The notes: generated by a model not told the origin, from the sequence alone. Counted from the first letter of the stretch, positions 2,067-63,513 are shown. The stretch is DNA of 64,000 nt from IMGVR_UViG_3300035665_000001:124001-188000, one strand, 5' to 3'. Program-made: numbers and translations.

Positions 2067-2570
2067 TCATTGAATTCTTCTTATTAATTTTTTAAATTTC
2101 CAGGCTGGTGTAGTTTCAGTTTGAATAAAATTCTGTTCTTCTATTAGTTGGAAATCATCATATTTTATTGGTGTTAAAAAGGTATCTGCCTCACCCTCAA
2201 AATCTACTTCACTGACATACATCGTATCTACTAAATTCATAAAATAATTGTAGATCTGAGCACCACCAATAATAAACAATTCGGTTTCATGTTTTTCTTT
2301 TGCAAATTTAATTGCTTCTGAAATATCTGTAAATACGTGCAAATGGTCAATACTACTATCACTATAAAATCCTTGTTTAGAAACAACTAATGAAACTCGA
2401 TTTGGTAGTGGTTTACCAATACTTTCAAAAGTTTTTCTTCCCATCAAAATATGGTGTCCTGTTGTTAATTCTTTGAATATTTTTAAATCCTCTGAAATTC
2501 GCCACAATAGTTGGTTTTTGAAGCCTAACTCATAGTTATTACCATGTGCAACAATCATCGAAATTTTCAT
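2067..2570 (-). CDS. folA: Dihydrofolate reductase
   Basis: [46 protein letters not shown] motifs; ATGA overlap with thyA. Confidence 0.97.
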
Positions 2571-4240
2571 ACTGCCATTTCTCCTTCAATTTTATCATGA
2601 CACTGATAGTTTAATAATTCGAAGTCATTCATAGTAAAATCATTAATATTTTTGGTGTTTGAATTTAGTTTCATTGTGGGTAGTGGAAAGGGAGTTCTAC
2701 TTAATTGTAGTTTACATTGCTCGAAATGATTTTTATAAATATGAGCATCTCCACTGGTATGAATAAATTCTCCTGGAACTAAGTTGCAAACTTGTGCGAT
2801 CATCATCGTAAGGAGTGCATATGATGCAATGTTAAAACCCAACCCTAAAAAACTGTCCACTGATCGTTGGTATAGTTGACAACTTAATTTTCCGTTCACA
2901 ACATAAAATTGAAATAAGGTATGACATGGTGGTAGTGCCATACCATCCAAATCACTTACATTCCACGCACTTAAAATTATTCTCCGACTATCTGGGTTAG
3001 TTTTAATGGTGTTAACAATTTCTGATAATTGGTCAATAATAATTTGTTTTCTAAATGCGTGATTTGGTGATGCACGAACTGTATAAAACTTACAATCTAT
3101 ATGAAATTCTTGTTTACCATCAATACAGGCTTTTATTAAATCTTTATTGAATTTTTTATTTGGAAATTTATTATTGAGATCATTAAATGATAAATATTCA
3201 AAACGCACACCATCTGAAAATTCAACGACCGTCTTTGTATTAAAATCGATTTCGTGAGCACTATAAAATTTATTCACCTTTGATGGTAGAAATATACATG
3301 TGTCCTTTGAATATTTGTTAGAGTTATAGTATTCCCTGTCAAGACACCAATCATTTATATTATCTTTTGTGCCAATTGACCATTCGTAAAAAAATGGTAA
3401 TAATTCTAAATCATATAAAAACTGTTTAAAGTCAAACCATCGAGAATCGACAAATATTCCTTTACCACCATATAGATGGTAGGATACATTATTAACATCG
3501 TAACACCGTTGTATCATGTTGTACCACATAGTTTGTGCTTTTGCATAATACGAAATATTCTTATCTTTTTTTATTGTAGAATAAAATTTACCAAAGTATA
3601 TTTGCTGACCAAATGTATTATTTCTGAGATTATGTTTACTTGCTATTTCCTTATGTCCAGTCAATATGGATTGTATTTCATAAGAACTATTTTTTGATTT
3701 ATCCAACTTTTTCAAAACCTTATATTCTGTACCATATTTGTTAGTCATAATACGACCAATAAATTCATCATTTGGAACTGGTTGATGATTATCAATGGAT
3801 GGTATTGGTATGGATTCTATGAATTTTTTTTCTTCCATTTCTATTAAAGTTGTAGAGTTTAACGCCCCTGTTTTTCTCCAACCAGAACCATATACATTTC
3901 CGAGCAATTTCATAGTATCACTATTGGTGTATCCCAATTTTTTACCTTGATTATCTGCGTTTGCAGTCCATATAGTTTTTTTACCAATGAGATTTTCTCT
4001 ACTATCCCCATAGTGTATTTCTGCTAATCTTCTTTCATCGGTACTACCTTCAATAAACCATAATAATTCGGAAATAATAGCTTTTAAATATGTTTTTTTT
4101 GTAGTGATTAATGGAAACCCTTGTGATAAATCGAATCGCATTTGATAACCAAAAATCGATTTTGTTCCAACGCCAGTTCTATCCGTTTTTTCATCACCAT
4201 CATCAATTATTTTTCTTAATAAGTCCAAATATTGTTGCAT
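2567..4240 (-). CDS. thyA: Thymidylate synthase with an in-frame HNH-type nuclease insertion of about 270 aa
   Basis: [56 protein letters not shown] motifs; insertion lies between YGSGWR and IDQL. Confidence 0.95.
3040..3874 (-). mobile_element. HNH/His-Me-finger homing-endonuclease-like domain inserted in frame in thyA
   Basis: [24 protein letters not shown]...YSKDTCIF motifs typical of phage HNH-like nucleases. Confidence 0.75.
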
Positions 4241-11713: not shown

Positions 11714-12502
11714 TTAAAAAAATAAGTTTTGTAATTTATCTGGTAATAAATGGGTATTGTTAGTTTTTAATGCATATTTTAGCATATCAGGATAATCTTT
11801 CCAAAAATCACCATCATATCTGTCTACTAATTCATTATCTACAATTAATTTTGGTGATGTAACTTGACCAATTATCATAGAATCATGTATTTTTTCTAAT
11901 TCTGTTATTGCATTATGATTATCCGTGTTTAATGCTACGGTAAATGGACTTTCACCTTTTTTATTTAATGGATTAATAATTGTTTGTTTGGCTAAACTAA
12001 AAAATAAAGATAAATATGGAGTATATAAATTTATACCTGATAAAATATGCAATATATGAGTACCTGTTATACTTTGAGAATTTACATTGATATTTTTATG
12101 TGATATGACAATTTCAAACATTTTATTTGGGTTAAGTGAATTTAAAGCACTTTTCATAAGATTGAAATCGGCAGATCTTTTTTCTGTAGTTTTGTGGTGT
12201 TCTAGCATCGTTTCAATGGTCATTGAATAATCATGTGTCGCTGTTTTTGAAACCGATATTGCAACTTCGATAGGTGATAAAAAGTTACTACCACCAACAT
12301 CAACATTGCATCCTTGATCGATGAATTGAGTTACCTTTTGTAATAATTTTATTTTATCAAGATCCGAATATATTAATGCTTCTAAAAGTGTTATTTTATT
12401 GGCAACTCCTTCTATACTTGAAATATCGATAGTTATATCAGGTTTTATATTACCATTTTTTAATTGTTCTAACCATTGATCAATTTGTTCAATTGAAAAC
12501 AT
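11714..12502 (-). CDS. Ankyrin-repeat protein 1 with C-terminal LPDKLQNLFF tag
   Basis: GCNVDV..SPIEVA, NINVN...G.HILHIL, NPLNKKGESPFTVA repeats. Confidence 0.8.
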   Translation of the reverse strand: MFSIEQIDQWLEQLKNGNIKPDITIDISSIEGVANKITLLEALIYSDLDKIKLLQKVTQFIDQGCNVDVGGSNFLSPIEVAISVSKTATHDYSMTIETMLEHHKTTEKRSADFNLMKSALNSLNPNKMFEIVISHKNINVNSQSITGTHILHILSGINLYTPYLSLFFSLAKQTIINPLNKKGESPFTVALNTDNHNAITELEKIHDSMIIGQVTSPKLIVDNELVDRYDGDFWKDYPDMLKYALKTNNTHLLPDKLQNLFF

Positions 12503-12540
12503 TATTTTTCTCCTTTATAATAAATTGTTAATGTTATTCC

Positions 12541-13305
12541 TCAGAATAAAAGGTTTTGTATTTTTTCTGGCAATAAAAATTTTTTTTCTGATTTAACTGC
12601 GTATGTTAACATTGCTGGGTAATCTTTCCAAAAGTTACCAATATATCTGTCCACAATTTCATATTTCACAATGTGTACTGGTGATTTACCATCATAACCT
12701 ATTAACATTGCGTGTTTGTTTTGTTTCCAGGCTAATATTGTAGCAGTGTTGGTGTTTAATAATGCAACAGTCATTGGACTATATCCATCCTTATTTATTG
12801 GATTAACATCAATATCAGGTCTAAGAGTTAGAATATCGTTAAGATGTTCAACATAATATGCCACTGCAGATAATATATGTAAAATATGAGTATTGTCATC
12901 TATAGAAATTGTGTTAACATTGATGTTTTCATTTGTTACTACTAAATTAAACATAATATTTGCATGTAATGCACCTAACGAACATTTCATAATATTTAAA
13001 TCGTTTTCGTGTTTTTTGTGGTGAGATAATAATAATCTGATTAGATCAACATAATCATTATCCTCAGACCAAAAAATTGCAGTTTCAATAGCAGAACAAC
13101 CGACTTGTACACCATCCACATCACAACCAAGTGATATAAGTTTTTCAATTAGTTTAATTTTTTCATTTGGTGATACATTTGTTACTCGTATAGCTGCATC
13201 AAGTAAGGTTGTTTGAAATTCCGTATCAACCATAAAATCGGGGGTAATCTTATGCTCTTCTAAATCTGAAATCCATCCATTAAGTTCTGTTAAGGTAATA
13301 ATCAT
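12541..13305 (-). CDS. Ankyrin-repeat protein 2 with C-terminal LPEKIQNLLF tag
   Basis: Paralog of its neighbours; DVNPINKDGYSPMTVA. Confidence 0.8.
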   Translation of the reverse strand: MIITLTELNGWISDLEEHKITPDFMVDTEFQTTLLDAAIRVTNVSPNEKIKLIEKLISLGCDVDGVQVGCSAIETAIFWSEDNDYVDLIRLLLSHHKKHENDLNIMKCSLGALHANIMFNLVVTNENINVNTISIDDNTHILHILSAVAYYVEHLNDILTLRPDIDVNPINKDGYSPMTVALLNTNTATILAWKQNKHAMLIGYDGKSPVHIVKYEIVDRYIGNFWKDYPAMLTYAVKSEKKFLLPEKIQNLLF

Positions 13306-13342
13306 TTTTTCACCAATGCTTTTAAATATTCAAATAGGGGTG

Positions 13343-14131
13343 TTAAAAAAACACATTTTTTAATTTTTCTGGTAGTTGATTAAATTTACCATTTTTATAG
13401 GCATAATTTAACATTTTTGGATATTTTTTCCAAAAATCTCCAAAATATCTATCAACTAAATTGTTGTCTATAATGTCAGTTTCAGCACCAGTAAAATTTC
13501 CAATAATCATGGTATATTTTCTTTTTTGTAGTTCCCTGACTGCAACATAATTTTTTATGTTTAATGCCACTGTGAATGGACTATTACCATTGTTATCTAG
13601 TGGGTTTAGATGTACATCTGGTGCATAAGAAAATAAATCGCCAATGAATGCTGCGTGATGTTCAGATTCAACTAAAATATGTAAAATATGTTGGTTGTTA
13701 CTATTTAATGCGTTTACATCCACTTGTTTATTTGATACCACAAGTTTAAATCTGGAATCTGGATCGTAAGAATTTATTGCCGTTATCATTAGACTAAAAT
13801 CTGATTCTTGTGTGGAATTATGTTTTCTTAACATCATATTTAATATAGATGTATTTATAACATCATCTTTTAACTGTAGTGCAATTTCTAATGGTGATCT
13901 ATAATTTTTATCATTTAAACTAGCATAATTAACACCATCAACATCACAACCAAAATCTAATAATTGTTTTATTACGTCAAATTTGACATTTACAGGCTCA
14001 TTACTCAAAATAATACTTTCAAGCATAGTAATGTCACCTTTACTACTACCTATAATTGCTTTATTTGGCTTTAATTCACCAGTTCGCAACATTTCAATCC
14101 ACGAATCAAAATACTTTTTGTTAAAACTCAT
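13343..14131 (-). CDS. Ankyrin-repeat protein 3 with C-terminal LPEKLKNVFF tag
   Basis: Paralog; start at MSFNKK (GAAGG RBS) removes the overlap with the upstream gene. Confidence 0.8.
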   Translation of the reverse strand: MSFNKKYFDSWIEMLRTGELKPNKAIIGSSKGDITMLESIILSNEPVNVKFDVIKQLLDFGCDVDGVNYASLNDKNYRSPLEIALQLKDDVINTSILNMMLRKHNSTQESDFSLMITAINSYDPDSRFKLVVSNKQVDVNALNSNNQHILHILVESEHHAAFIGDLFSYAPDVHLNPLDNNGNSPFTVALNIKNYVAVRELQKRKYTMIIGNFTGAETDIIDNNLVDRYFGDFWKKYPKMLNYAYKNGKFNQLPEKLKNVFF

Positions 14132-14141
14132 ATGCATACCT

Positions 14142-14912
14142 TCAAAATAAAAGACTTGAAATTTTAGGTGGTAGCATATCAAATTTCCCAAATTTATATG
14201 CATATTGTAACATATCTGGATGATCTTTCCAAAAATCCCCATTATATCTATCAACTAATTCATAATGTATTATCTTTTTTGGGTCATTTACTTTTCCAAT
14301 TATTCTGCATTTTATATTGTGTTTTAATGCAGAAATTGCAGATGAATCATCTATGTTGATTGCCAATGTTAATGGACTTTCACCTTCGGAATTTAGTGGA
14401 TTGGATATTGTTTTTGGGTTATCCAAAATTAAATTAACAAACGTTGGGTTATAGATTCCTTCATAAATCATAATATGTAATATGTAATCACCATATATTG
14501 TTTTTTCATTTGTGTTTATATTATCACTACCAACAATTACAGGGAATAATGCTTCTGCATGTGGTGATTTAAACGACGTTTTTATTATTTCTAAATCTAA
14601 ATGGTTAGATTTATGGTGTTGTAACATTAGATATACAACATCTGTATAGTTCATGGTTTGCATAATTGCTCGCTCTATTGGGGTAAATACCCCTTCTGCA
14701 TCAACATCACACCCCAATTCAATTAACTTTTCTACTCTATCTAATAATTCCTTTTTAGTTAATTTACTGCTTATTGCAGCATCTAATAAATTTACGGAAT
14801 TCTTATTTCCCAAACTAACTAACTTATTTGGGTTCATTACACCGCTTTTTATTTTTTTTATCCATTCATCAATTTGTTCTGGAGTATAAACTGTAACTGT
14901 GTTCTTTGTCAT
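14142..14912 (-). CDS. Ankyrin-repeat protein 4 with C-terminal LPPKISSLLF tag
   Basis: Paralog; GCDVDAEG..TPIERA, NPLNSEGESPLTLA. Confidence 0.8.
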   Translation of the reverse strand: MTKNTVTVYTPEQIDEWIKKIKSGVMNPNKLVSLGNKNSVNLLDAAISSKLTKKELLDRVEKLIELGCDVDAEGVFTPIERAIMQTMNYTDVVYLMLQHHKSNHLDLEIIKTSFKSPHAEALFPVIVGSDNINTNEKTIYGDYILHIMIYEGIYNPTFVNLILDNPKTISNPLNSEGESPLTLAINIDDSSAISALKHNIKCRIIGKVNDPKKIIHYELVDRYNGDFWKDHPDMLQYAYKFGKFDMLPPKISSLLF

Positions 14913-14931
14913 TTTATTGCCTTTTGTGAAT

Positions 14932-15795
14932 TCAAATTATATCGCTGATAAAAAATATGTTTCGAATATTTTCTGGTAATGTTTCGGGAATATAAGTCAA
15001 AATTAATTTTATTAATGTTGGTTCTAATTTTATAACATTTTTTACCTGTGTACTGTTGATTTTATCAATCCATACATCTTTACCATCAATAAATTGTAAG
15101 ATGTAATCTTTATTAATTCCTTCCCCGCTAGTAATATAATCATAGACATCTTTTGAACCATTAGTTAAGGCTTCCAATGCTATTCGCTGAACATCACCTA
15201 ATCTTGTCAAACTACTTGTGTTCATTTCACCGTACTGAGAATATTCATAGCCCATGTTTCGAAATAAATTTTCACGATTCTTGTTTTTTTCTGAAAAATT
15301 AAAAATTTCTTTTATGAAATCTAAATCATTATGTTTTGCTGCAATGATACACACTAGATGTAAGAACCCATTATCTCTAATATTTCCCGATTTATGTAAA
15401 TTTCTTAAATTATTTCCAAAACATTTGTCGTTGATACCATACTTATCCATAAATTGAATAATATCTTTTAAGGTTTTAGTTTCCCCACCACTAATTGCGT
15501 GTGATACTGCCGATTGTAATTTTATATTTAAAGATGCGAATAGAATGTTTAACTTTTTTTCTTCATCACGACAATACGCCATAAGTTCCGGTAATATATC
15601 TTTATCCGAAACATTACTAGCCCCGTATTTTGTTTCTAATGATTTTTTAATTTTTTCAAATTTATCATCATAAGACTGATAGTTTGATAAAATTTTTGAA
15701 ATTTCATCCCCAATATTTTCGACACCTGAAAAATTATCTCTTGCATGTTTTTCCTGTGATGAAATTTTTTTAATATTTTTAGTTGCTGTATTCAT
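14932..15795 (-). CDS. Helical (possibly degenerate ankyrin) protein with LPENIRNIFF tag
   Basis: Member of the array; near-terminal motif. Confidence 0.6.
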   Translation of the reverse strand: MNTATKNIKKISSQEKHARDNFSGVENIGDEISKILSNYQSYDDKFEKIKKSLETKYGASNVSDKDILPELMAYCRDEEKKLNILFASLNIKLQSAVSHAISGGETKTLKDIIQFMDKYGINDKCFGNNLRNLHKSGNIRDNGFLHLVCIIAAKHNDLDFIKEIFNFSEKNKNRENLFRNMGYEYSQYGEMNTSSLTRLGDVQRIALEALTNGSKDVYDYITSGEGINKDYILQFIDGKDVWIDKINSTQVKNVIKLEPTLIKLILTYIPETLPENIRNIFFISDII

Positions 15796-15816
15796 AATTT
15801 GTGTCGATTGATTGAG

Positions 15817-16725
15817 TTAAAAAAACAAATTTTTTATTTTTTCCGGTAAATATCTATTATCTTTTGTAATCTTATATAACAATTTACTCACTATTGGGGA
15901 TTGAATATCAACTATGCGTTTTAACCATGGTGTGTAATCTTCTTCAGCAAATTTACCCAATTCTATTAAATTGCAGAATAATATTCCTGTTTCTGTTGTA
16001 TAATAATTTCTTATTAGTGATGCTAAAGTATCCATAGCTTGTTTATCGGTAGATAAAACGGTTTCATACTTTTTCATAATATCGTCGATTGTTTCACCAC
16101 CATTGAAAAATAATATTTCACTTGGAAATGTTTTAATCGCTGATAACATCATTCGAAATAATTCAGGCGAATAATTTGCATCAACCAGAGAATAGTAAAA
16201 ATGTAAGTCTTTAAGTGTTCGGAAAATTGCCCATGACTTATCAGGACTTATTGATTTAGCCTGTTTAACCAATTCTTTTTTAAAAAAGAATTCCATATCA
16301 GAAAACCAAGGTTTTTCCGAGAGAGCCGTAAACCAATGTCCAGAACCGCCACCATCATAGTTCAACACTGCGTAAACTAATATTCCAATGTCATAATTAT
16401 TAAATCTGATTTTATCATTCAGTGAAATATTTTTGTACATGAACTTATAACTCCAGGGTGGTTTATTTTTCCCTTTTATGAGTTTATTGAATTCATTAAA
16501 TATCACCGACCAAATAAATTCACAGTTTTCCGTGTTGTTTGCTATACCGGATGCATATTCATATAATGCTTCATTTTTTGAATTTCGCAGTAATCCTCTC
16601 ACAAACTCAGCTTTTTGTATATAATGAGTATCCTTTAAACTGTCATTACATAATTTAATAAATTCGATTGGGTTTTTGGGTGAATGTAGTTTTTTAGCTT
16701 TTTCACCAGCTTCAAGGTAATCCAT
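15817..16725 (-). CDS. Hypothetical helical protein with LPEKIKNLFF tag
   Basis: GGAG RBS; terminal motif. Confidence 0.65.
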   Translation of the reverse strand: MDYLEAGEKAKKLHSPKNPIEFIKLCNDSLKDTHYIQKAEFVRGLLRNSKNEALYEYASGIANNTENCEFIWSVIFNEFNKLIKGKNKPPWSYKFMYKNISLNDKIRFNNYDIGILVYAVLNYDGGGSGHWFTALSEKPWFSDMEFFFKKELVKQAKSISPDKSWAIFRTLKDLHFYYSLVDANYSPELFRMMLSAIKTFPSEILFFNGGETIDDIMKKYETVLSTDKQAMDTLASLIRNYYTTETGILFCNLIELGKFAEEDYTPWLKRIVDIQSPIVSKLLYKITKDNRYLPEKIKNLFF

Positions 16726-16736
16726 ATTATCTCCAT

Positions 16737-17591
16737 TTAAAAGAAAATTAGATTTTTAACCTTTTCAGGTAAAAAATCGACATTTTTAGTTTTGTTATAT
16801 AATAATTTTTTTATATCATCTGGACAGTTTGGATTTTTACAAAAGTTTAGAATAGTAGCTATTCTAAAATTCGACATCATTGATTGTGAACTTAAAACAC
16901 GAGTCAATAATTTCCCCAACTCTATTCCATTTGCTACTACTCGCCACTCTAAGTTGTGGTTAGTTAATAATGCTTCGACTAAATCATCTGTATCTAATGT
17001 TCGGATTTTCCAATCCTTTGCTTTATCACATACAGCTTCAAAGATTTTTGGCATTTTTAATAATCCTGGGTTTGATGCCATCATAATTAGATTTTTATCA
17101 GATTTTATATTTTTCAATAATATTTTTTCAGGTGCGTTAGGATGTTTGAAAAAATCTGCTCGTTGTCTTTCTAACCAACTTTTATCTACTTGTGGATTAT
17201 TTTTAGGTATTAGCGAACTATAAATTTCTTCTAATTGTTTTGGTGAGGTATGTTTTGATTTCCAAAATTTAAATGGTAGTCCTCTAGCTAAACCATTTTC
17301 CCATACGTCATCGAATAATTCTTTCGAACCATTATCAAATAATTTATAAGTGTCGTTGCCATAAATAATCAAAAATTTTTCAAGATTAATATTTGCCAGT
17401 TCTCTGATAATATCATCTGTACAGTTTTTTTCTTCCGATATTTTTAGATAAATTTCCCATGGAGTGTGGATACTTGTTCCAATTAAGTGGGTTGGGGTAT
17501 TTTTTATGGTTTTTACTAATTCTTCTAATTCAACATGAGAAATACTCGGATTTTTAAGTTTTTCATAGCAATCATCATACATATTTATCAT
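16737..17591 (-). CDS. Helical-repeat (LRV/HEAT-like) protein with LPEKVKNLIFF tag
   Basis: KHPNAP, SNPGL, TNHNL, KNPNCP repeats; terminal motif. Confidence 0.65.
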   Translation of the reverse strand: MINMYDDCYEKLKNPSISHVELEELVKTIKNTPTHLIGTSIHTPWEIYLKISEEKNCTDDIIRELANINLEKFLIIYGNDTYKLFDNGSKELFDDVWENGLARGLPFKFWKSKHTSPKQLEEIYSSLIPKNNPQVDKSWLERQRADFFKHPNAPEKILLKNIKSDKNLIMMASNPGLLKMPKIFEAVCDKAKDWKIRTLDTDDLVEALLTNHNLEWRVVANGIELGKLLTRVLSSQSMMSNFRIATILNFCKNPNCPDDIKKLLYNKTKNVDFLPEKVKNLIFF

Positions 17592-17634: not shown

Positions 17635-17686
17635 TATTTATAGGTGTTTTTAATGTTCACTTTATTTTAAAAGGTCAGTATAAATA
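17635..17686. promoter_or_regulatory. Divergent T4-type late promoters (TATAAATA on both strands)
   Basis: TATAAATA on minus at 17635-17642 and on plus at 17679-17686; related ATAAATA precedes most structural genes. Confidence 0.7.
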
Positions 17687-17739
17687 TTATTTGAATAGTT
17701 TTAAATTATTAAGTTTTAATAACAAAAAGGAGATACAAA

Positions 17740-18555
17740 ATGGTTGATTCAATTTTTAAAAAAATGGGTAGTGTAGTTGCAACCGCTGTTGCAAATGAAG
17801 CATCTGCCAGACAGGCGGCAGTTACTACTTTAACCACTGCATTAGAAACTGCTAATACTAATAGACAAAATGCTATTTCAACTGAAGCATCTGCAAGACA
17901 AGCCGCAGATACTACTTTAACAAATAATCTTGCTTCTGAAGCAACTTCAAGAGCAACTGCTGATAACAATTTGACTACAGCTATCAATACCGAAAAAGCT
18001 AGAATTGATGCTATTTTATCAGCATCATCTGCTGATAAAGATTCATTTGCTGAAATTGTTACTTTGATTAACTCAGTTGATACTACTAATGATAACGCAT
18101 TCGCATCATATGTAACATCTAATAATGCAGCAGTCGCGGCATTAGATACTGCGTATAAAGCTGCTGATACTACATTAACTAATAATTTGGCATTAAAAGC
18201 ACCAATTGCAAACCCAACATTTACTGGTGTTGCAACTTTCGTAGGTATTAAAGAAACTAAAATTGCTATGTCAGCAAACAACATTGATTTAGCTACAGGG
18301 TCTGTATTCAGTAAAACTATTTCAGGTGCTACTACATTAACTATTTCAAATTCACCTACATCTGGTTTAGTAGGAACTTTTATTCTTAACCTTACTAATG
18401 GTGGTTCATCAACTATTACTTGGTTTAGTGGTATTAAATGGGTTGGTGGTACAGCTCCAACTTTAACAACTGCTGGTAGAGATAGATTGGGTTTCATTAC
18501 TGAAGATGGTGGTACAACTTGGGATGGTTTTGTAATGGGTAAAGATCTTAAATAA
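17740..18555 (+). CDS. Tail/whisker fibre shaft or adaptor protein (MVDSIFKK family)
   Basis: EASARQAAD coiled-coil repeats; KAPIANPTFTG; C-terminal ITW...KW.GG.APTLT..G.D...F.T.DGGTTW domain. Confidence 0.75.
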   Translation: MVDSIFKKMGSVVATAVANEASARQAAVTTLTTALETANTNRQNAISTEASARQAADTTLTNNLASEATSRATADNNLTTAINTEKARIDAILSASSADKDSFAEIVTLINSVDTTNDNAFASYVTSNNAAVAALDTAYKAADTTLTNNLALKAPIANPTFTGVATFVGIKETKIAMSANNIDLATGSVFSKTISGATTLTISNSPTSGLVGTFILNLTNGGSSTITWFSGIKWVGGTAPTLTTAGRDRLGFITEDGGTTWDGFVMGKDLK

Positions 18556-18565
18556 GGAGATTTTT

Positions 18566-19807
18566 ATGATTAAAGACATTATATTGTGTGCAAATACCCC
18601 AAAGGTATCTAGTGGAACTACATATGCGAGTAGTTCAAATACTACCGCTAGTACAAACCGTGGAACTCCAGTATCACAAGCCTTTAATACATCGGGATCA
18701 TATTTTATATTTGGGACAACATCTGCTGGAAACTACTTACAGGTATCATTTGGATTTGCAGTATCCGTTACACAGGTAACATATCGAAATGCTGTTGGTA
18801 GTAGCTGGGCACCAACAAGTGTAAAAATTAGGTATAGTAATGATGGCAGTACATGGAATGATGCTGTCACTTACTCTGATAACGCCAGTACATCTTTACA
18901 AACTATATCTGTATCTGGTGGTTCTGGTTCTTATTGGCAGTTATACCAAAATAGTAGCACTCGTGCTGGTAGTGGTGGTTATGAGTGGCACATGGATAGT
19001 TTTTCTATGACTGGTTCGTATGGATTAGTTAATGGTCAGATTTCTTATACTGTTCCAGGTACTTATACATGGGTTTGTCCGCAAGGAATAACTAGTGTTT
19101 GTGCAGTTGCTATTGGTGGTGGTAGTGGAGGCTGTCATTATACTGGTGGTGCTGGTGGCGGTTTATCTTACCAAAATAATATTTCTGTAACGCCAGGTCA
19201 ATCTTATACTGTAGTTGTAGGTGCAGGTGCGGTTGGTACAGGTTGGACTTATGGAAAAGGTGGCGATAGTAGTGTTTTTGGTATGGTTGCTGGTGGCGGT
19301 GGTACAATCGGAGGTTTAGGTTATAATTCTACTCCACCTGGTGGTGTTGGTAATGCTGGAACTGGTGGGTTAGGAGAGGGTTATTTTAGAAATAATTCTG
19401 TCTACAATGTTGGTGGTAGTGGTGCTGGTGGTTACGGATACAATGGTGGCGTAGGTACATATATCACTAGTTCACATGGTAATGGAAATGGTGGTGGTGG
19501 TACTGGTATTTTTGGTGGTACTGTTGGTGGATCTGGTGGTACATATGGGTTTGGTAATGCTGGATATACTGGAAGCGGTGGTGCTGGTGGATCTGGTGGT
19601 ACATCCGGTGGATTAGTAACTGGGTGGACAACAGACAGTAGTGCAAGTAGTGGTTCTGGTACACCTGGCAGTGGCGGTTTATACGGTGGTGGTGGTGGTT
19701 CTGGATGTGGATATGGGTATGTTAGTTCCACTGGTGGAAATGGTGCTATACGTATCATCTGGGGTGCTGGTCGTGCGTTCCCAAATACATTAACTGGAGA
19801 CTTATAA
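18566..19807 (+). CDS. Glycine-rich fibre/receptor-binding protein with discoidin-like N-terminal domain
   Basis: MIKDIIL leader; YLQV.F..V..V...YSNDG.TW; PGTYTWVCP...AIGGG; GGNGAIRIIWG. Confidence 0.75.
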   Translation: MIKDIILCANTPKVSSGTTYASSSNTTASTNRGTPVSQAFNTSGSYFIFGTTSAGNYLQVSFGFAVSVTQVTYRNAVGSSWAPTSVKIRYSNDGSTWNDAVTYSDNASTSLQTISVSGGSGSYWQLYQNSSTRAGSGGYEWHMDSFSMTGSYGLVNGQISYTVPGTYTWVCPQGITSVCAVAIGGGSGGCHYTGGAGGGLSYQNNISVTPGQSYTVVVGAGAVGTGWTYGKGGDSSVFGMVAGGGGTIGGLGYNSTPPGGVGNAGTGGLGEGYFRNNSVYNVGGSGAGGYGYNGGVGTYITSSHGNGNGGGGTGIFGGTVGGSGGTYGFGNAGYTGSGGAGGSGGTSGGLVTGWTTDSSASSGSGTPGSGGLYGGGGGSGCGYGYVSSTGGNGAIRIIWGAGRAFPNTLTGDL

Positions 19808-20091
19808 TGGATATGTATATTGAAGTTAACGATGGTGTTATTCATGGACATCCAATACTTGCAGATAATTTGGGTTATTTAGGGTTAGATCTACACAACT
19901 TACCAAGTAATTATGTAAAATATATCAGAGATGATCATTCTATCTCACCTACAAATGTAAAATCCGGGCAGTGGTTGGAGTATATTAAAGAATATAATCC
20001 TGAATTGGGGGTTGTATTTGAGTATGCTTTAGTTTTGGGAAATCCTGATTCTGATGCAAATCATATACCACCTGCATTACAAACAAATTAA
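19807..20091 (+). CDS. Putative fibre chaperone (paralog of 47086)
   Basis: MYIE..DGVIH.HPIL.DNL; coupled to the Gly-rich gene. Confidence 0.6.
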   Translation: MDMYIEVNDGVIHGHPILADNLGYLGLDLHNLPSNYVKYIRDDHSISPTNVKSGQWLEYIKEYNPELGVVFEYALVLGNPDSDANHIPPALQTN

Positions 20092-20111
20092 TTTTAAAAG
20101 GGAAAACTATT

Positions 20112-20627
20112 ATGCAAATTGCAATTATCGACAACGGTCAAGTCATTAAATTAGGCTACTATAAATCATTATTTCCAAATGTATCTTTTCCAACAACTGG
20201 ACCTGATGCAGAATTTTTACAAGCTAATTCGGCTTTAGAAGTTACTGTTTGGAAACCAACAACAGCAACACAAAAATTAGTTGCATCCGAACCTTATGTT
20301 GAAGGAAATTTTGTTTATACTGTTAGAGTAGAAGACAAAACTGCAGAAGAACTTGCTGCAGAAACAGCTTCAGTAGAAGCAAAAAAAGATGCACAAACAG
20401 TATCAATGAAACAAGCAAGAATTGCTCTTTCAAGACAAGGATTGTTAGATGATGTTACTGCTGCATTATCATTAATTGAAGGTCAAGTTGGTGAAGAAGC
20501 AAGAATTGCTTGGGAATTTGCTACAGAAGTAAAACGTGGTGATAAAGTGTTAAAATCTGTGGCTTATGCTTTAAGCTGGGATGAAAGTAAATTAGATGAA
20601 TTGTTTGAATTAGCTACAACAATTTAA
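20112..20627 (+). CDS. Tail-fibre assembly-like protein
   Basis: VSMKQARIAL...LLD.V, IAWEFATEV.R, LDELF..A motifs. Confidence 0.65.
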   Translation: MQIAIIDNGQVIKLGYYKSLFPNVSFPTTGPDAEFLQANSALEVTVWKPTTATQKLVASEPYVEGNFVYTVRVEDKTAEELAAETASVEAKKDAQTVSMKQARIALSRQGLLDDVTAALSLIEGQVGEEARIAWEFATEVKRGDKVLKSVAYALSWDESKLDELFELATTI

Positions 20628-20825
20628 TAATGTTAAAAAAATAAAACCCCATACAAACTTAATTGTTTTTATGGGGTTTTTCATGCCATCATCAAATCTT
20701 AAATTATTTCCGTGTAACCAAAAATCATATATTTTCAAAAATTTAACTGTCCTAACTGAGCGGATATGTCTTTCGGCAGGAGTGGATAAATAAGATTGAA
20801 ATAATAATTTAGAGGGATATGTTTT

Positions 20826-21737
20826 ATGATTAAACAACTTATAATGGGTGTTGGTGATAGCACTTCTGGTGGGGGTGCGACGTTATTTACTTTTTCATCA
20901 TTCACTTTTACAAACGCCTCATCAACTGGACGAAATGGCCCAACATTAGCTCAATGTACATCTGCCTATTCTACTCAACCATGGGTATCTAGCACTGCAA
21001 ATTTTAATATGGTAACACAAGGAATACAGTTATGGACTGTTCCCTCAACTGGAACATATCGTATACTCGCAACTGGTGCTGCTGGAGCACAAAGTAATCC
21101 AAAAGCATATACTGCAGGTGGTAATGGTGGTTCGGCACAAGGAGATTTTACTTTAACATCTGGAACTATACTAGCAATCCTTGTTGGACAAATGGGAACT
21201 ATACCACAAACATATTCTGGTGGTTGGGCTGCAGGTAGTGGTGGTGGTGGTTCATTTGTAGTATTGAATTCATCAAATACTCCATTAATTGTTGGAGCAG
21301 GTGGTGGCGGTGGTGGTGATGATGGTGCTACGTACCAAACATTTCAACAAGGTGGACAAGGATCGGTTGTTACGAATTATACTGGCTCAAATGGACTTGC
21401 AGGTAACAATGGTGGTGGTAATGGTGGGGCTGCAGGTGGTGGTTTCAATAATAATGGTGTTAGTGGTTATAACAAAGTTGGTGGTCTTTCTTATCTGAAT
21501 GGTGGCACTGGTGGTAATGGAAATGTTGATTATCCATCTGGACAGATTGGAGGATTTGGTGGTGGCGGTCAGGGTGGTGGTTGTCCTGGCGGTGGTGGTG
21601 GTGGTTTTATAGGTGGGGCATATGGTCCAGGAAACGTAAGTGGACGTGGTGCAACCCATTTTAATTCCGGTTCAAACCAAATAAATACAACTGGTGGTAA
21701 TAGTGGGCATGGTTTCGTCACTATTACAAAATTATAA
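20826..21737 (+). CDS. Glycine-rich (ALK/LTK-like Gly-rich domain) receptor-binding protein
   Basis: TFTNA..TGR.GP, GIQLWTVP.TG.Y.I.A.GA.G, L.ILVGQ.G, GGGGSFV, GGFGGGG. Confidence 0.75.
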   Translation: MIKQLIMGVGDSTSGGGATLFTFSSFTFTNASSTGRNGPTLAQCTSAYSTQPWVSSTANFNMVTQGIQLWTVPSTGTYRILATGAAGAQSNPKAYTAGGNGGSAQGDFTLTSGTILAILVGQMGTIPQTYSGGWAAGSGGGGSFVVLNSSNTPLIVGAGGGGGGDDGATYQTFQQGGQGSVVTNYTGSNGLAGNNGGGNGGAAGGGFNNNGVSGYNKVGGLSYLNGGTGGNGNVDYPSGQIGGFGGGGQGGGCPGGGGGGFIGGAYGPGNVSGRGATHFNSGSNQINTTGGNSGHGFVTITKL

Positions 21738-21762
21738 TAAAAGATTAAAAAGGGGAAAATCT

Positions 21763-22344
21763 ATGTATATTAATACATTAACAAAAGAAACATATAACAC
21801 ATTGGATGACATAAGAACAAGTTTTAGTAGTATATCCTTACCCACAAATTTAACAGATTCAGTATTGTTAACATTTAATATTGTAGAAGTATTAAATTTA
21901 CCAGAACCTCAAGTTACAGATTTACAAGTTGCAATCGAAACAAATGATGTAGAATTGGCAAATGATGGAAATTATGTACAAAAATGGGTTATTACTGATA
22001 AGTTTGCAACTTATACTAATTTTCAAGGGGTAATTGTTACTAAAGAAGAACAGGAACAAAATTTTTTATTAGATAAAAATAAACTACGAGTTCCTTATGC
22101 GATTACACCTATACAAGCAAGAATGGGCTTTTTAAATGTTGGTTTACTTGATAAGGTAGAGACTTTAATAAATGCAGATAAAGTTAAAACTATTTGGTGG
22201 GAATACTCATTAGAAATTCATCGCAACAACGAACATATTTTAAGTTTAACACAGGCATTAAATTTAACTGATACAGAAATGGATGATATTTTTATTTCTG
22301 GTAGAAATTTGGTTCCAGACGTTCTCGCAGATGTTGTTCAGTAA
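21763..22344 (+). CDS. Tail-fibre assembly-like protein
   Basis: VP..ITP.QAR, WWEYS.E..R, L.LTD.EMDDIF; start at MYINT. Confidence 0.65.
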   Translation: MYINTLTKETYNTLDDIRTSFSSISLPTNLTDSVLLTFNIVEVLNLPEPQVTDLQVAIETNDVELANDGNYVQKWVITDKFATYTNFQGVIVTKEEQEQNFLLDKNKLRVPYAITPIQARMGFLNVGLLDKVETLINADKVKTIWWEYSLEIHRNNEHILSLTQALNLTDTEMDDIFISGRNLVPDVLADVVQ

Positions 22345-22451
22345 ATAACATTCTGTTATAATTGACATTTTGTCCCCACTCAAAATTAAATTTGTCTGGG
22401 GATTTTTTGTGCTCGCCGATAAATAATTTTTAATATAATGTGGAGTATAAA

Positions 22452-25139
22452 ATGATTAAAGATATTATTTTGGGTGTTGAATCACCATATACAGTAAGTG
22501 GTAGTAGTGCTGGTGATAAAAATTGGGATAAAGTAAGTTTATTATTGAATGGGGATGATTTGTTTGATCATTCATCAAATACTAAAACTATAAGCAATAC
22601 ATTAACAACCGTTAACAATGCAACAAAAAAATTTGGTAGTGGCAGTTTATCATTTTCATCTTTAGCAACTATGGTTGTACATTCACCTTCTGATAATTTA
22701 ATAAATTGGTTTTCTGGTGGGACTTATACTTTTGAATGTTGGGTTTATCCTACATCAATAACAGATGCAAATTCTGGTGGATCGTTAGTTGGAAATGGGT
22801 GTTCGGATGGATCTAATGGATATAATTATTGGTCATTTGGACCTAAGTCTGATGGTAGACTCGGTTTGTATTATTATACAGGTGGGTTAAACAATGTTTA
22901 TTCAAACTCAACAATCCCGTTTAATGCTTGGACTCATATTGCTTTCACATGTGATGGAACTAATATAAAATTTTGGATAAATGGCAACTTAGATACCAAT
23001 ACCACCATAGTAGGTTCGCCACAAATTTCTAATGCTGCAAACACTGGTGATTTTTCTATGGGTAGATTAGCCGCAGGTGTATTTAGTGGTTACGTTGACG
23101 ATGTTCGAATTACAAAAGGTATTGATAGATATACAGCTAATTTTACGCCACCAACAGCAGCATTGCCAACTTCCATGTTTGTGGCTGATTCATCAGCAAC
23201 ACCTGTTTCTGATCCCAATACATCAAAATATGTTTCTTTGTTATTAAATGGCGATGGTACAAATGGTTCACAAAATAACACTTTCATTGATGGTAGTGTT
23301 AACAATGTAACCATTACTAAGTATGGTGATGCTACTCAAGGTTCTTTTAGTCCTTTCGGTAATTCGTGGAGTGTTTATTTTGATGGCAATGGGGATTATT
23401 TAAGTTTGCAAAATAGTGTTACCAATCAACCAGGCAATGGAGATTTTACTATAGAATGTTGGGTTAACGTAGATTACATTTCTTCGTATCAAATTATATT
23501 TTGTAAAGGTGAAGGGATAACTTCGGGTGAAATGTTTTTTGCTGTTACTGCATCTGGTTATATTGTATTGTATAACCCCTCAGTAACAAGTTCAAATACA
23601 ATTACTCCAGGTTTATGGAATCATGTAGCATTAGTTAGACAATCCGGAGTAATAAAAATATTCGTAAATGGTGTTGGTGGGACAGGTGTAAATGATTCGA
23701 CAAATTTCAATTCTACAAGCTATTTTAATTTAGGAGATAGAAATGCAGGTGCTAGTTATTTAAACTATCCGTTAAAGGGTGCAATATCAAATTTTAGAAT
23801 GGTGAAAGGTAGTGCACTTTATACTGCTAACTTTACACCATCTACAGCACCATTAGTTGCAGTAACGGGAACAACATTATTGATGTGTCAATCAAACGGG
23901 TTTATTGATAACAGCTCTAATAATTCTTTGATTACTGTTTATGGTGAAACTAAAATTATTAAAAGTAGTCCATTTCCCGAAATATATGATAAGAATGTTC
24001 ATGGAGGCAGTGTTTATTTTGATGGAACTGGTGATTATTTGAGTATGCCTAGTTCTGCTAATTATGCGTTTGATACCAGTGATTTTACAGTGGAAGCCTG
24101 GGTTAACCCAGCTACTGTTGGGTTATTGTGTGTTTTTCAATGTAGAGATACTGCATCTAATGGTATGTGGTTGGGATTATATAATGGTAACGTATTTTGG
24201 TATGATTCGGCAATTGGTACATGGAGTGGTACTGCGGTAAAATTAAATAGCTGGACACATTTAGCTTGGTCGAGAAATTCTAGTACATGCAGAATGTTTG
24301 TAAATGGTGATGATGTTGGAGTTACAAAAACATCAAATGCAAATTATACAAGCACTAATGCGAAAATAAGTTATGATGCTAGTAATAATGGTAATTATTT
24401 TAATGGTTATATTTCAAATTTGCGAGCAGTAAAAGGAACCGCACTTTACACTGTAAATTTTACACCAGGTACAAGTCCATTAAGTCAGGTATCCAATACG
24501 ATTTTACTGTTAAAATTTGATAATGCCGGGATTTATGATGCAATAGGTAAAAACGATTTAATAACTTATGGCAACTCTCAAATTAGTACAACCCAAAAGA
24601 AATATGGTACAGGTGCTATGTATTTTGATGGTAGTAGTTATGTAAAAATTCCAACTAGTGTTGGTGGAGATTTAGATTTTCAATCTATTGATTTTACTAT
24701 AGAATTTTGGGCAAATAGTCCAATGAGTGCAAATCAAGGATGGGTTGATAAGTGGGGAAGTAGTAGTAGCAGATCTGTGTTCATAGGATACTCAAATTCA
24801 TCACCTAGTTCAGGTGTGAATTTTAACTGGACTACTAATGGTACTAATTGGAGTGCAATTAATTCTTTATCTATCCCATCTGCAAATGTATGGCATCATT
24901 ACGCTGCAATTAGAAATGGTAATACATTAAACTTTTTTATTGATGGTGTTTCTCAAGGTACTGCATCGATAAGTGGTTCTATATATTCTAGTTCATCACC
25001 GTTTATTATTGGTTGTAATGGTGAAACACTAGGTTCTAGTTGGTATTATACGGGGTATATTGATGATTTGCGTATAATCAAAGGGAAAGCACTTTATACT
25101 GCAAATTTTACCCCTCCATCTGCACCATTATCATTATAA
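22452..25139 (+). CDS. Four-domain LamG/concanavalin-A-like receptor-binding protein 1
   Basis: Four repeats of FT.E.W...W.H.A..R...G.I...R..KG..YT.NFTP; MIKDIILG leader. Confidence 0.85.
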   Translation: MIKDIILGVESPYTVSGSSAGDKNWDKVSLLLNGDDLFDHSSNTKTISNTLTTVNNATKKFGSGSLSFSSLATMVVHSPSDNLINWFSGGTYTFECWVYPTSITDANSGGSLVGNGCSDGSNGYNYWSFGPKSDGRLGLYYYTGGLNNVYSNSTIPFNAWTHIAFTCDGTNIKFWINGNLDTNTTIVGSPQISNAANTGDFSMGRLAAGVFSGYVDDVRITKGIDRYTANFTPPTAALPTSMFVADSSATPVSDPNTSKYVSLLLNGDGTNGSQNNTFIDGSVNNVTITKYGDATQGSFSPFGNSWSVYFDGNGDYLSLQNSVTNQPGNGDFTIECWVNVDYISSYQIIFCKGEGITSGEMFFAVTASGYIVLYNPSVTSSNTITPGLWNHVALVRQSGVIKIFVNGVGGTGVNDSTNFNSTSYFNLGDRNAGASYLNYPLKGAISNFRMVKGSALYTANFTPSTAPLVAVTGTTLLMCQSNGFIDNSSNNSLITVYGETKIIKSSPFPEIYDKNVHGGSVYFDGTGDYLSMPSSANYAFDTSDFTVEAWVNPATVGLLCVFQCRDTASNGMWLGLYNGNVFWYDSAIGTWSGTAVKLNSWTHLAWSRNSSTCRMFVNGDDVGVTKTSNANYTSTNAKISYDASNNGNYFNGYISNLRAVKGTALYTVNFTPGTSPLSQVSNTILLLKFDNAGIYDAIGKNDLITYGNSQISTTQKKYGTGAMYFDGSSYVKIPTSVGGDLDFQSIDFTIEFWANSPMSANQGWVDKWGSSSSRSVFIGYSNSSPSSGVNFNWTTNGTNWSAINSLSIPSANVWHHYAAIRNGNTLNFFIDGVSQGTASISGSIYSSSSPFIIGCNGETLGSSWYYTGYIDDLRIIKGKALYTANFTPPSAPLSL

Positions 25140-25404: not shown

Positions 25405-26019
25405 TCAAAATAATATATCTGTTGTTTTTTGATTTTTGAATTCTTGTAATTCTTTTACATTATATGACATGCGATGTACTTCACAATAACCATAATTTTT
25501 TATAGCAGAAATATGTTCTTTGGTAGCATAACCAACATTATTTAAAAAATTATAATTTGGATATTTTTTATGATGTTCACTCATAAGTGAATCTTTAGTA
25601 TGTTTTGCGATGATAGATGCTGCACCAACACCTTTTACTAATGCGTCTGCTTTTATTAACGTTGTTAAGTTTTTATTGGTTACACCGAACGTTTTATTTC
25701 CATCATATAAGTAATTTTCATTTTTACCAAAATGGTCAATAATATTCTCTAATGATCTTTTAATCATTGCAGACAATCCAAACACATCAATATCTTTTGC
25801 AGTTGTTATTACTGAAAAATATTCACTATTAGATTTGATTTTATCAACTAAGTCATTTCGTTGTTTAGTGGATAATTTTTTAGAATCATTAGCAAAAGAA
25901 ACATCACCAGTTATTTTTAATCCAGTAAATACCATTTCAGCTGCTAAACACCCTCTACCTGCTTCGTCTATGAATACATAATTCTTATAAATTTCATCAT
26001 AATTTGTTACATCAATCAT
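25405..26019 (-). CDS. rnhB: Ribonuclease HII
   Basis: IDEAGRG, DSKKLS, DG, KAD...V.AASIIAK, N.GY.T.EH, HR.SY motifs. Confidence 0.93.
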   Translation of the reverse strand: MIDVTNYDEIYKNYVFIDEAGRGCLAAEMVFTGLKITGDVSFANDSKKLSTKQRNDLVDKIKSNSEYFSVITTAKDIDVFGLSAMIKRSLENIIDHFGKNENYLYDGNKTFGVTNKNLTTLIKADALVKGVGAASIIAKHTKDSLMSEHHKKYPNYNFLNNVGYATKEHISAIKNYGYCEVHRMSYNVKELQEFKNQKTTDILF

Positions 26020-33269: not shown

Positions 33270-34082
33270 TCAAAATATTAATAGTTGTTTCAGTTTTTTA
33301 GGTAATATAGTTTCATCTTTAGTGTACTTATACATTTCAATTTTTATTTTATCTGGACTGTTTTTATGTTTTGCAATGGCAATTTTTCTTGATGTTGTGG
33401 TACATTTATCAAAAAAATCAACTAAAATTTTTGTTGATGTATCTTTGAATTGTGTTAAAACGTTAACAATCTGGTCTTCAAATACATCATCATCCGATAA
33501 CTGATATTCCACTTCATCTCGATACCAATCATACATGTCATCGTCAGACATAGAACTGAATAATTTATGTAAAAAAACAATTGTTTCTTTGTTTGCTATG
33601 TTATACGAGATAGTTATAGTTGCGAATATTCGGTTAAAAGGCTCATCTGTAATATCAAACCATAATGGTCTCCCTAAAACACAATAATGTAAAAAACTAT
33701 ATGGGGATTTTGAATTAAAATACTTGATCCAGTCCAATTTATTACTGGTACCTACACCAGGGGTAAGTTTAAATAGGTGATTTAAAGTATTAAAATGATC
33801 ATCTGTATTTACAAAATTATCAAGATAAACAACATTCGCAAATTTATTCAAAACATCTAAATTGAATGGTCCCTGTTGACTACATATTAAACTTTTATAA
33901 AAAGAGATTCTATTAGACGCTTTTTCTATATTCTCCGATATTTCAAAAATCTCCAATAATTCTGTATTTGAAAAAGTGAATTTACTTAGAAATTCACTAT
34001 TCCTCGCAGTTATAGATGTATTAAAAAATTCTTTGATCTGTTTTGATTTATCCACAATATCACTTTTTTTTAATTTACTCAT
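33270..34082 (-). CDS. Helical-repeat protein with C-terminal LPKKLKQLLIF tag
   Basis: Tail IAKHKNSP..IK..MYKYTKD...LP matches the 15817 and 16737 tails; TAAATA repeats upstream. Confidence 0.65.
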   Translation of the reverse strand: MSKLKKSDIVDKSKQIKEFFNTSITARNSEFLSKFTFSNTELLEIFEISENIEKASNRISFYKSLICSQQGPFNLDVLNKFANVVYLDNFVNTDDHFNTLNHLFKLTPGVGTSNKLDWIKYFNSKSPYSFLHYCVLGRPLWFDITDEPFNRIFATITISYNIANKETIVFLHKLFSSMSDDDMYDWYRDEVEYQLSDDDVFEDQIVNVLTQFKDTSTKILVDFFDKCTTTSRKIAIAKHKNSPDKIKIEMYKYTKDETILPKKLKQLLIF

Positions 34083-61787: not shown

Positions 61788-61792
61788 AAAAA

Positions 61793-62997: not shown

Positions 62998-63513
62998 ATG
63001 GCTGACGAAAAACTTAGTGCAAAATTTGCAAAATATTGTGGAGAAGGCAAACTTACCATGGTTAAAAAATATATTGCTGATAAAAATGTCGATGTTAATT
63101 GGAATATGAGTTCACCATTAACAAAAGCAGTTAAATATGATAAAATTGAAGTTGTGAAACTTTTACTATCTGACCCTCGATTACAAACCGATTTTGAGAA
63201 TAAAAAAGAGTTGCGTGGATCGTTAATGTATAATAACCCACCATTAGTTTTAAATAATGTTATTATCAATCCATTTACTGAGGCAATGTTTACTAAAAAG
63301 TATGATATTCTCGATTTATTTTTATCAGATGGTAGATTTACAACTAATCGAACTGAATATTTGGATATTTTATTAAAAATTGATGATGATGAATTGAACA
63401 ATTACTTTAAAAAAATTCCAGGGTTTAAAGAATATGCTGTTTCCAAAGTTAAAGAAAACAATGATTATGTTAAGATAATTTCTAAATCTGTTGCATCCAT
63501 TATGATGTTTTAA
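62998..63513 (+). CDS. Ankyrin-repeat protein with divergent terminal tag (ISKSVASIMMF)
   Basis: C.EGKL.MVK, VDVN...SPL..AV......VVKLLL.DPR; late motif at 62959. Confidence 0.75.
   Translation: MADEKLSAKFAKYCGEGKLTMVKKYIADKNVDVNWNMSSPLTKAVKYDKIEVVKLLLSDPRLQTDFENKKELRGSLMYNNPPLVLNNVIINPFTEAMFTKKYDILDLFLSDGRFTTNRTEYLDILLKIDDDELNNYFKKIPGFKEYAVSKVKENNDYVKIISKSVASIMMF

Follow-up and report, generated by a model that had tools for sequence, protein, structure and literature searches.

Why should a row of neighbouring genes, which encode proteins that differ in the rest of their sequence, all end in the same short peptide? The question is raised by a stretch of 64,000 nucleotides (IMGVR_UViG_3300035665_000001:124001-188000, called the window below), in which seven tandem genes on the minus strand, between positions 11714 and 17591, share the ending LPxx[ILV]xx[ILV][FLI]F. 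Their source is an uncultured freshwater tailed jumbo myovirus, a distant relative of T4. A first-pass annotation of this DNA had regarded the ending as a portable signal that docks diverse binding scaffolds onto one partner, and had offered capsid loading, a T4-type sliding-clamp motif and an F-box-like remnant as its possible meanings. The observations described here suggest that this C-terminal tag most likely docks the proteins that carry it to a single partner common to all, possibly the virus head during its assembly. Genes are named below by their first coordinate.

The C-terminal tag and its extent

The seven endings quoted for the array agree exactly with those of the seven minus-strand open reading frames (ORFs), and the ending LPKKLKQLLIF of the distant gene 33270 was also read correctly. 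Scanning the ORFs of the whole genome with the pattern [LI]P..[ILVM]..[ILVM][ILVMF]{1,2}F gave 13 matches, every one of which lies within five residues of the C-terminus, compared with 0.018 C-terminal matches and 0.58 matches anywhere in residue-shuffled proteomes. ORFs that terminate in phenylalanine are in excess (34 of 342, against 17 expected). Synonymous codons differ among the tags of this genome, and the constraint is thus on the protein, as had been proposed.

The tag had been described as the last ten residues or so. The ending itself stands, but its length does not: in the alignment, the conserved tail comprises about 30 residues and reads ...H/N-x-N-x-P-x-x-I-K-x-x-L-Y-x-x-T-K-D-x-x-F/Y-L-P-x-x-x-K-[ND]-h-F-F. 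A hidden Markov model (HMM) of the tail, which the first-pass annotation had suggested building for a scan of the genome and its relatives, was constructed from 24 tails. It finds 17 ORFs of the genome at 13.5-47 bits and leaves all others at 8 bits or less. Gene 62998, said to have a divergent version of the tag, scores 13.5 bits (E 0.002) against an HMM built without it, and its orthologue in the related phage described below has the canonical tail VSKDLKDIFFF. Two genes of a second array have no LP (window-equivalent positions 67170-68612 and 68634-69122, genome positions 191170-192612 and 192634-193122); they end in …KKLSNVLAF and …KVLSCFTF and may carry degenerate tags. The genome total is about 16 carriers.

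About 50 sequences were read, and with a single exception the stop codon follows the terminal Phe directly or after no more than one to two residues. The consensus of the whole clade is H-P-N-C-P-x-x-I-K-x-x-L-Y-E-x-T-K-D-x-x-Y-L-P-x-x-x-K-[DN]-h-F-h-F-COOH. A search of IMG/VR with a degenerate DNA pattern for LPxK.KN.FF followed by a stop codon yielded nothing beyond another assembly of this phage and a single match by chance. The latter is to an unrelated viral contig of 29% G+C (IMGVR_UViG_3300027892_000060), on which an ORF (L020:10-525, plus strand) ends in RLPPMLSSIIF, similar to the tail of 14142; this could be a coincidence or a more distant carrier of the tag.

Carrier families and folds

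An all-against-all BLASTP comparison confirmed that the four ankyrin-like genes of the array are paralogues (31-41% identical). Genes 33270, 77616 and -111707 form a second family (B), 16737 and 64164 are weakly related, and 15817, 14932 and 65604 resemble other carriers only in the last 25-35 residues. It is to these last 25-35 residues that similarity between the carrier families is confined. An N-terminal motif common to the carriers was looked for and none was found. Within the four ankyrin paralogues, too, the best-conserved stretch is C-terminal, VDRYxGDFWKDYPxML.YA.K....LP.K....F.

AlphaFold2 (AF2) models of two array proteins were based on shallow alignments of 4-5 sequences. The model of 11714, with a mean predicted local distance difference test (pLDDT) score of 88.8, has an ankyrin fold, for which Foldseek ranks AnkB and DARPins first among PDB structures (E 6.6e-5, probability 1.00). 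Its three paralogues match Pfam Ank_2 at 21.5-25.7 bits, just under the threshold of 27.3, and 11714 itself has no Ank match. Gene product 16737 is modelled as an all-helical solenoid (mean pLDDT 82.6), for which Foldseek finds only weak ARM/HEAT matches. The tag forms a short helix at the end of each model, that of 16737 (residues 276-282) having a pLDDT below 50. As modelled, the carriers span at least two folds, ankyrin and alpha-solenoid.

The tail profile cross-matches the internal repeats of LRV (PF01816) and DUF4116 (PF13475) proteins. When it was searched against 1.84 billion representative proteins, 42 matches were obtained at E <=1e-3. Of these, 32 are single and full-length and end at the C-terminus or at most two residues from it; they cover several families, one of them ankyrin (P0036), and have the consensus H-P-N-C-P-x-x-I-K-x-x-L-Y-E-x-T-K-D-E-K-Y-L-P-Q-E-A-K-D-I-F-L-F. 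The other ten are internal and multi-copy. Five of the ten were read and scanned with Pfam, and proved to be two LRV proteins, two DUF4116 proteins and one STAND NTPase, the internal repeats of which read DKLPEKVKNLLFQL. The 35-residue module aligns to such repeat units, with 'Y-L-P-x-E-x-K-D' corresponding to the start of a repeat helix, and within the carriers the helix that precedes the tag shows a tag-like P-x-x-[IV]-K-x-x-L-[YF] pattern. Judged by sequence, the tail module looks like one LRV/DUF4116-like repeat helix followed by a truncated next helix, and the ankyrin carriers look like a different fold with the same 1.5-repeat ending. This is a resemblance and not a membership, as neither the carriers nor their metagenomic relatives match these Pfam families, the carriers remaining under every Pfam threshold. 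Furthermore, the last repeat of the carriers differs from LRV, DUF4116 and HEAT-like repeats in being cut after one helix, in its hydrophobic end and in its concerted evolution within a genome.

The likeness of the tail to a half repeat of the LRV/DUF4116/HEAT type suggests that the helical carriers probably belong to one loose solenoid superclass. The description of the tag as a portable module on diverse scaffolds is upheld by the fold searches for ankyrin and alpha-solenoid, but the helical carriers should no longer be called fully unrelated. Language-model features hint, as a lead only, that 14932, counted among the three helical proteins of the array, is itself ankyrin-like.

Concerted evolution of the tails in a related phage

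Among 5.8 billion proteins, 16737 has a single homologue other than itself. It is encoded by a related phage, known from an NCBI metagenome contig and with a G+C content of about 37%, which is represented also by contigs of 208 and 261 kilobases. A tblastn search of 50,697 cultured phage records with 16737 gave no match. In the relative the tagged genes make up a single long array on the plus strand, of which the stretches read contain 17 tagged ORFs, and this array is syntenic with both arrays described here and with the neighbouring Rep3 gene. All 17 tails end in [DE]-[IV]-F-h-F, most of them with LP six residues upstream.

Nine carriers have reciprocal-best orthologues in the relative. Their bodies, compared without the last 35 residues, are 31-43% identical, which shows that the carrier families predate the split of the two phages. 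The identity of the last five residues is 0.78 among the 17 carriers of the relative, as against 0.27 between the nine orthologue pairs, and the tail consensus of the present genome, K-N-L-F-F, is one residue shorter than that of the relative. The codons of the relative's tails are mixed (GAT 6 and GAC 9; TTC 9 and TTT 8; ATA, ATT and ATC are all used), which indicates that the uniformity of the tails is kept at the protein level and not by recent gene conversion. Tails that are alike within a genome and unlike between orthologues suggest selection to fit one genome-specific partner. The tails evolve in concert in each genome, which argues for a shared partner and supports the earlier proposal of one common docking site. 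Whatever this partner is, the co-evolution of 17 tails within a genome offers a tractable case, in a virus, of one hub that serves many clients through a short linear motif.

Promoters and predicted time of expression

The core of the T4 late promoter is TATAAATA. The motif NATAAATA, which matches it, occurs in 201 copies, 108 of which are in the sense orientation at most 100 nucleotides upstream of ORFs, with a peak at -35 to -55. It heads the tail sheath and sheath-stabiliser genes, and is found ahead of all six independent carrier units, namely array 1, array 2 and the single genes 33270, 62998, 77616 and -111707. As the same motif precedes the carriers and the sheath genes, the carriers are predicted to be late proteins, made alongside the parts of the virion. 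The TAAATA late motifs noticed earlier ahead of the array and of both distant genes are thus real, with the correction that array 1 has a promoter at its first gene only. One TATAAATA precedes 16737 and none occurs within the array, which suggests that the seven genes form one late operon. The array of the relative is headed by TATAAATAG. A second class of motif, TGTA[TA]AAT, is extended -10-like and of an early type; it heads the genes for gp55, ThyA, ribonucleotide reductase and Rep3 and two DpdA-like genes. Genome-wide, TATAAATA is depleted, with 57 copies compared to about 136 expected from base composition.

A possible signal for loading into the virion

Of the three meanings offered earlier, capsid loading fits best. 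It is quite possible, although short of probable, that the tag is a virion or prohead loading tag, a C-terminal analogue of the T4 internal proteins' capsid targeting sequence. The T-even internal proteins are highly diverse, counter host defences and have only the capsid targeting sequence in common (PMC3012670). The carriers would resemble the T4 set (IPI, IPII, IPIII and Alt) in having a short peptide common to otherwise unrelated, diversified proteins, in their late expression, as judged here from motifs, and in the presence of a T4-type prohead, for which tblastn detects the gp21-type protease (41% identity, E 5e-24), the gp23-type capsid protein (E 8e-29) and the portal protein gp20 (E 1e-11). 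A further likeness would lie in the function proposed, that of injected proteins which, ready-made, bind or inhibit proteins of the host (PMC3012670).

The process can be pictured as follows. The last 30 residues or so would be a portable docking module, composed of an LRV/DUF4116-like repeat helix, a turn and a truncated 'LP' helix, which ends in a hydrophobic run and an obligatory terminal Phe. The module would be joined to diversified protein-binding scaffolds, ankyrin and alpha-solenoid, that are produced late together with the virion proteins. The tail might then enter a hydrophobic pocket on a single late partner encoded by the phage, the likeliest candidate being some part of the T4-like prohead during its assembly (the scaffolding core or the capsid interior). 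In this way 16-19 scaffolds would be loaded in the virion and delivered with the DNA, after which they would serve as ready-made binders of host proteins such as those of defence. The full proposal, in which a lineage of freshwater T4-like jumbo phages loads the virion by means of an uncleaved C-terminal peptide (YLPQEAKDIFLF-COOH) derived from a solenoid half-repeat, and injects 16-19 ankyrin or solenoid anti-defence binders, is conceivable but doubtful. A C-terminal peptide that targets diverse cargo into an HK97-fold shell is known from the encapsulin cargo-loading peptides and from the C-terminal helix-turn-helix of the P22 scaffolding protein, which binds the coat; neither resembles the tag in sequence.

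Several observations weigh against loading into the virion. The T4 signal consists of about ten N-terminal residues and is cleaved by gp21, whereas the tag is C-terminal and 11-30 residues long. The tripeptide [LI]PE, which corresponds to an LxE-type cleavage site, is present in about half of the tags here but shows no conservation in the relative. The T4 internal proteins are small and basic, whereas the carriers are large repeat scaffolds of 150-470 residues and are not basic (median isoelectric point 6.4); the net charge of the carriers was considered as a hint of co-packaging with DNA and proved uninformative. A PHROG search assigned no carrier to a family, the only match to an 'internal head protein' being insignificant (E 0.0065). 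The tail helix in the model of 11714 has a fairly high pLDDT, 84 falling to 68, and the tail may thus pack onto its own domain. The likeness of the tag to a common solenoid half repeat means that structural needs could account for part of its conservation. Finally, late expression is a prediction from promoter motifs only.

If the full proposal is true, tailed phages would possess a second protein-packaging code of independent origin, and nature would have its own means of displaying DARPin-like binders. Should the tail be a loading or docking signal, it would add a new address label, short and transferable, for the particles or a hub protein of phages, and the carriers, as a large and fast-diversifying set of repeat-protein binders, would be probable host-manipulating effectors of abundant uncultured lake phages. 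The peptide of about 12-35 residues can be fused to a reporter, and might be of use for loading cargo into capsids.

Other explanations of the tag

The resemblance to repeats allows for a simpler explanation, in which the tag has no addressing function and is no more than the conserved half-repeat that caps the C-terminus in a superfamily of LRV/DUF4116/HEAT-like solenoids evolving fast, a cap that the ankyrin genes gained by fusion. The matches of the tail profile to internal LRV, DUF4116 and STAND NTPase repeats, the same P-x-x-[IV]-K-x-x-L-[YF] pattern in the helix before the tag, and the AF2 models, in which the tail is a helix prolonging the stack, are all consistent with a cap. A cap, however, leaves unexplained why tails are homogenised across non-homologous families in each genome and yet diverge between orthologues, why nearly all frames stop so close to the terminal Phe, why a run of four to five hydrophobic residues persists at a free terminus, and why the cap is retained by ankyrin proteins that already possess their own. 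We consider a purely structural role distinctly unlikely. The strict C-terminal position and the invariant Phe at the end, preceded at a distance of 4-5 positions by an acidic or amide residue, would also suit some other machine that reads a free hydrophobic C-terminus, such as a host or phage protease or unfoldase (the tag then being a timing degron), a PDZ- or TPR-type receptor, or an external site on the virion that displays adhesins; array 1 does adjoin tail-fibre-like genes (17740-25139). Nothing in the data favours such a machine specifically and no candidate receptor is at hand, and the known ClpX-type tags (LAA) and the encapsulin cargo consensus do not match. This explanation is unlikely. 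The F-box-like LPxxI remnant fares far worse. As in the multigene families of poxvirus and Orientia ANK-PRANC proteins, ankyrin repeats are here combined with a conserved C-terminal motif containing LP, and LPxE[IA]xx[IL]F is loosely similar to the consensus of the first F-box helix; such a remnant would recruit a Skp1-type ubiquitin ligase of a eukaryote. Pfam gives no F-box or PRANC match for nine carriers scanned at E <=0.1 or for another seven at E <=0.01, only 10-11 residues (one helix) follow LP in place of the roughly 40 of a three-helix F-box, and the hydrophobic spacing is offset by one. A tailed T4-like phage from lake water, moreover, implies a bacterial host, which has no Skp1. The F-box/PRANC explanation is effectively refuted and is extremely improbable.

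The terminal [DN]-h-h-F-COOH might also tether the scaffolds to a sliding clamp (either the beta clamp of the host or a phage clamp that went unrecognised) or to another DNA-bound hub. A second C-terminal motif, [ST]x[DN]hLF-COOH, is present on DNA enzymes of this genome. RNase HII (25405-26019, minus strand) ends in TTDILF, four TGT/DpdA-like paralogues (phrog_10773) end in TTDFLF, TTNLLF, SDGLF and SELF, and a DUF5591 protein ends in SNSLF; in those read upstream, namely RNase HII and the paralogues of 441 and 503 residues, a charged linker precedes the LF tail. The T4 proteins gp43, gp55 and gp33 bind the clamp through tails of the form [ST]LDFL[FYL], and end in the T4 record in ASLDFLFG, PSLDFLYEAND and NTLDFLL. 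The likeness of the enzyme tails to these ends is the best argument for a clamp. In both systems one docking peptide with acidic and then hydrophobic or aromatic residues, at or near the C-terminus, is used by many proteins; the tag termini NLLF, NLFF and DIFLF fall in the same class, and the phage is related to T4, having gp55, gp46/47 and head and tail genes. The tags end, however, in K[ND]LFF or KDIFLF and differ from T4 [ST]-L-D-F-L-[FYL] in consensus and length, having the additional conserved LP and K positions and abutting the scaffold without a flexible linker. The bacterial beta-clamp binding motif is the pentapeptide Q-L-[SD]-L-F or the hexapeptide QLxLxL, and it occurs in none of the tails read in this genome or in the relative.

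The clamp itself was not detected. Profile searches and tblastn found no PF02916, PF09116, phrog_223 (gp45), PF00712 (N-domain of the beta clamp), gp44, gp62 or gp33, searches with phrog_168 and phrog_254 were also negative, and the sole match to phrog_223 (E 0.003) is a spurious Cys-rich ORF of 170 residues. Since the record is only 85% complete this absence is no proof, but phrog_223 is also absent in the three complete cultured phages that are closest by capsid protein. Furthermore, by their promoter motifs the carriers are late and the DpdA-like genes with LF tails early, and the RNase HII tail of the relative, STDLLF, is off the tag consensus DIFLF of that genome, suggesting a different partner. 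For these reasons (clamp absence, early DpdA-like promoters, off-consensus RNase HII tail) the enzyme tails are treated as a separate motif. The T4-type LxxLF clamp motif suggested earlier is weakened, and tethering of the scaffolds to a clamp appears rather improbable; docking onto one late partner, perhaps in the prohead, is preferred. An ancestral origin of the DpdA-like LF tail was also considered and rejected, as the phrog_10773 homologues of KVP40 and pf16, which are located in 7-deazaguanine gene clusters, have no such tail.

The tagged loci

The positions of the carriers and of the related features are collected in the table.

Table. Carriers of the C-terminal tag, their promoter and the enzyme genes with LF tails (positions in the window unless stated)
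Feature	Position	Strand	Remarks
Promoter core TATAAATA, T4-type late	17635..17642	-	51 nucleotides 5' of first array gene; sole promoter-like motif of the seven-gene array
Array gene 1	16737..17591	-	284 residues, all-helical alpha-solenoid (model), end ...NCPDDIKKLLYNKTKNVDFLPEKVKNLIFF; orthologue in related phage 36-39% identical
Array gene 2	15817..16725	-	302 residues, helical, end ...TKDNRYLPEKIKNLFF; only last ~25 residues common with other carriers; reciprocal-best orthologue in relative
Array gene 3	14932..15795	-	287-residue repeat protein; tag LPENIRNIFF, then five extra residues ISDII
Array gene 4	14142..14912	-	Ankyrin paralogue, 256 residues, end LPPKISSLLF; Ank_2 just under Pfam threshold
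Array gene 5	13343..14137	-	Ankyrin paralogue, ~262 residues, end LPEKLKNVFF; database version 262 residues
Array gene 6	12541..13305	-	Ankyrin paralogue, 254 residues, end LPEKIQNLLF
Array gene 7	11714..12502	-	Ankyrin paralogue, 262 residues, end LPDKLQNLFF
Single carrier, family B (with two genes outside the window)	33270..34082	-	270 residues, end ...NSPDKIKIEMYKYTKDETILPKKLKQLLIF; AATAAATA late motifs 28-36 nucleotides upstream
Ankyrin protein, degenerate tail IISKSVASIMMF	62998..63513	+	171 residues; CATAAATA 39 nucleotides upstream; adjoins second array
Second array, seven genes	window-equivalent 64164-70593		Just past window end; five canonical tails and two degenerate, the latter also Phe-terminal
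Further single carriers	window-equivalent 77616-78422 and -111707..-110940		Outside window
phrog_10773 paralogues and DUF5591 protein	genome 285997-287322, 287360-288916, 300400-301131, 302763-304418, 304485-305996

Searches of Pfam and PHROG with array gene 2 gave no match. The orthologue of array gene 3 in the relative stops exactly at the tag (IPQTIQDVFLF), and a variant of this gene that skips 323 base pairs (15319-15643) is found in contigs from two other lake runs; together with the extension ISDII, the skip suggests that the gene may be decaying or polymorphic. Array gene 5 could be read as a longer ORF reaching to 14254, which overlaps the upstream gene and probably does not represent the true start. 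Array 1 was found in four other lake runs, where most pieces are at least 99% identical. In these runs contigs break at several places inside the array and run on into unlike sequence, which, like the 323-base-pair skip, is consistent with a plastic locus.

The second array and 62998 adjoin a gene for a plasmid-type Rep3 initiator with Rep3_N and Rep3_C domains (61754-62962, plus strand), which lies behind an early-type promoter. The neighbourhood of Rep3 and array 2 is kept in the related phage.

The phage and other features of its genome

The window represents bases 124001-188000 of a linear IMG/VR virus record of 306,333 base pairs, which is about 85% complete and has a G+C content of about 29%. 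Pfam and PHROG matches include a tail sheath protein, a gp15-like sheath stabiliser, baseplate and tail-fibre proteins, a gp46-like SbcC, ribonucleotide reductase and thymidylate synthase, and tblastn with T4 proteins detects gp55 (E 2e-6), gp46, gp47 and UvsX. A T4-type helicase, primase, gp32 and clamp loader were not detected in the record, tblastn with gp41, gp61, gp32 and gp59 being negative. By the capsid protein (31-33% identity), the closest cultured phages are the jumbo phages PA5oct, XaC1, RsoM2USA and Asteriusvirus-like coliphages. The same phage sequence was found again in lake and freshwater metagenomes from 2016-2025.

Similarity to family B DNA polymerase is spread across three separate ORFs (genome positions 246953-248692, 257123-257830 and 279267-280169), suggesting that the polymerase is split or highly divergent; an LF-type tail is absent from all three. 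In the thymidylate synthase ORF (2567-4240, minus strand, 557 residues), the ThyA domain is interrupted by an in-frame HNH endonuclease-like segment (residues ~154-411). An antisense ORF at 17709-18497, overlapping 17740-18555, is probably no gene. Glycine-rich proteins, of the Gly_rich_2 and tail-fibre-like kinds, are encoded at 18566-19807 (plus strand) and 57210-59381 (minus strand), where the local G+C content is raised to about 0.37-0.40. Three paralogues of about 870-900 residues (22440-25139, 47449-50082 and 50243-52855, all on the plus strand) have four Laminin_G_3 (concanavalin-like) domains each and match PHROG baseplate-wedge and virion structural families; the last two of them start with MIKDIILG.

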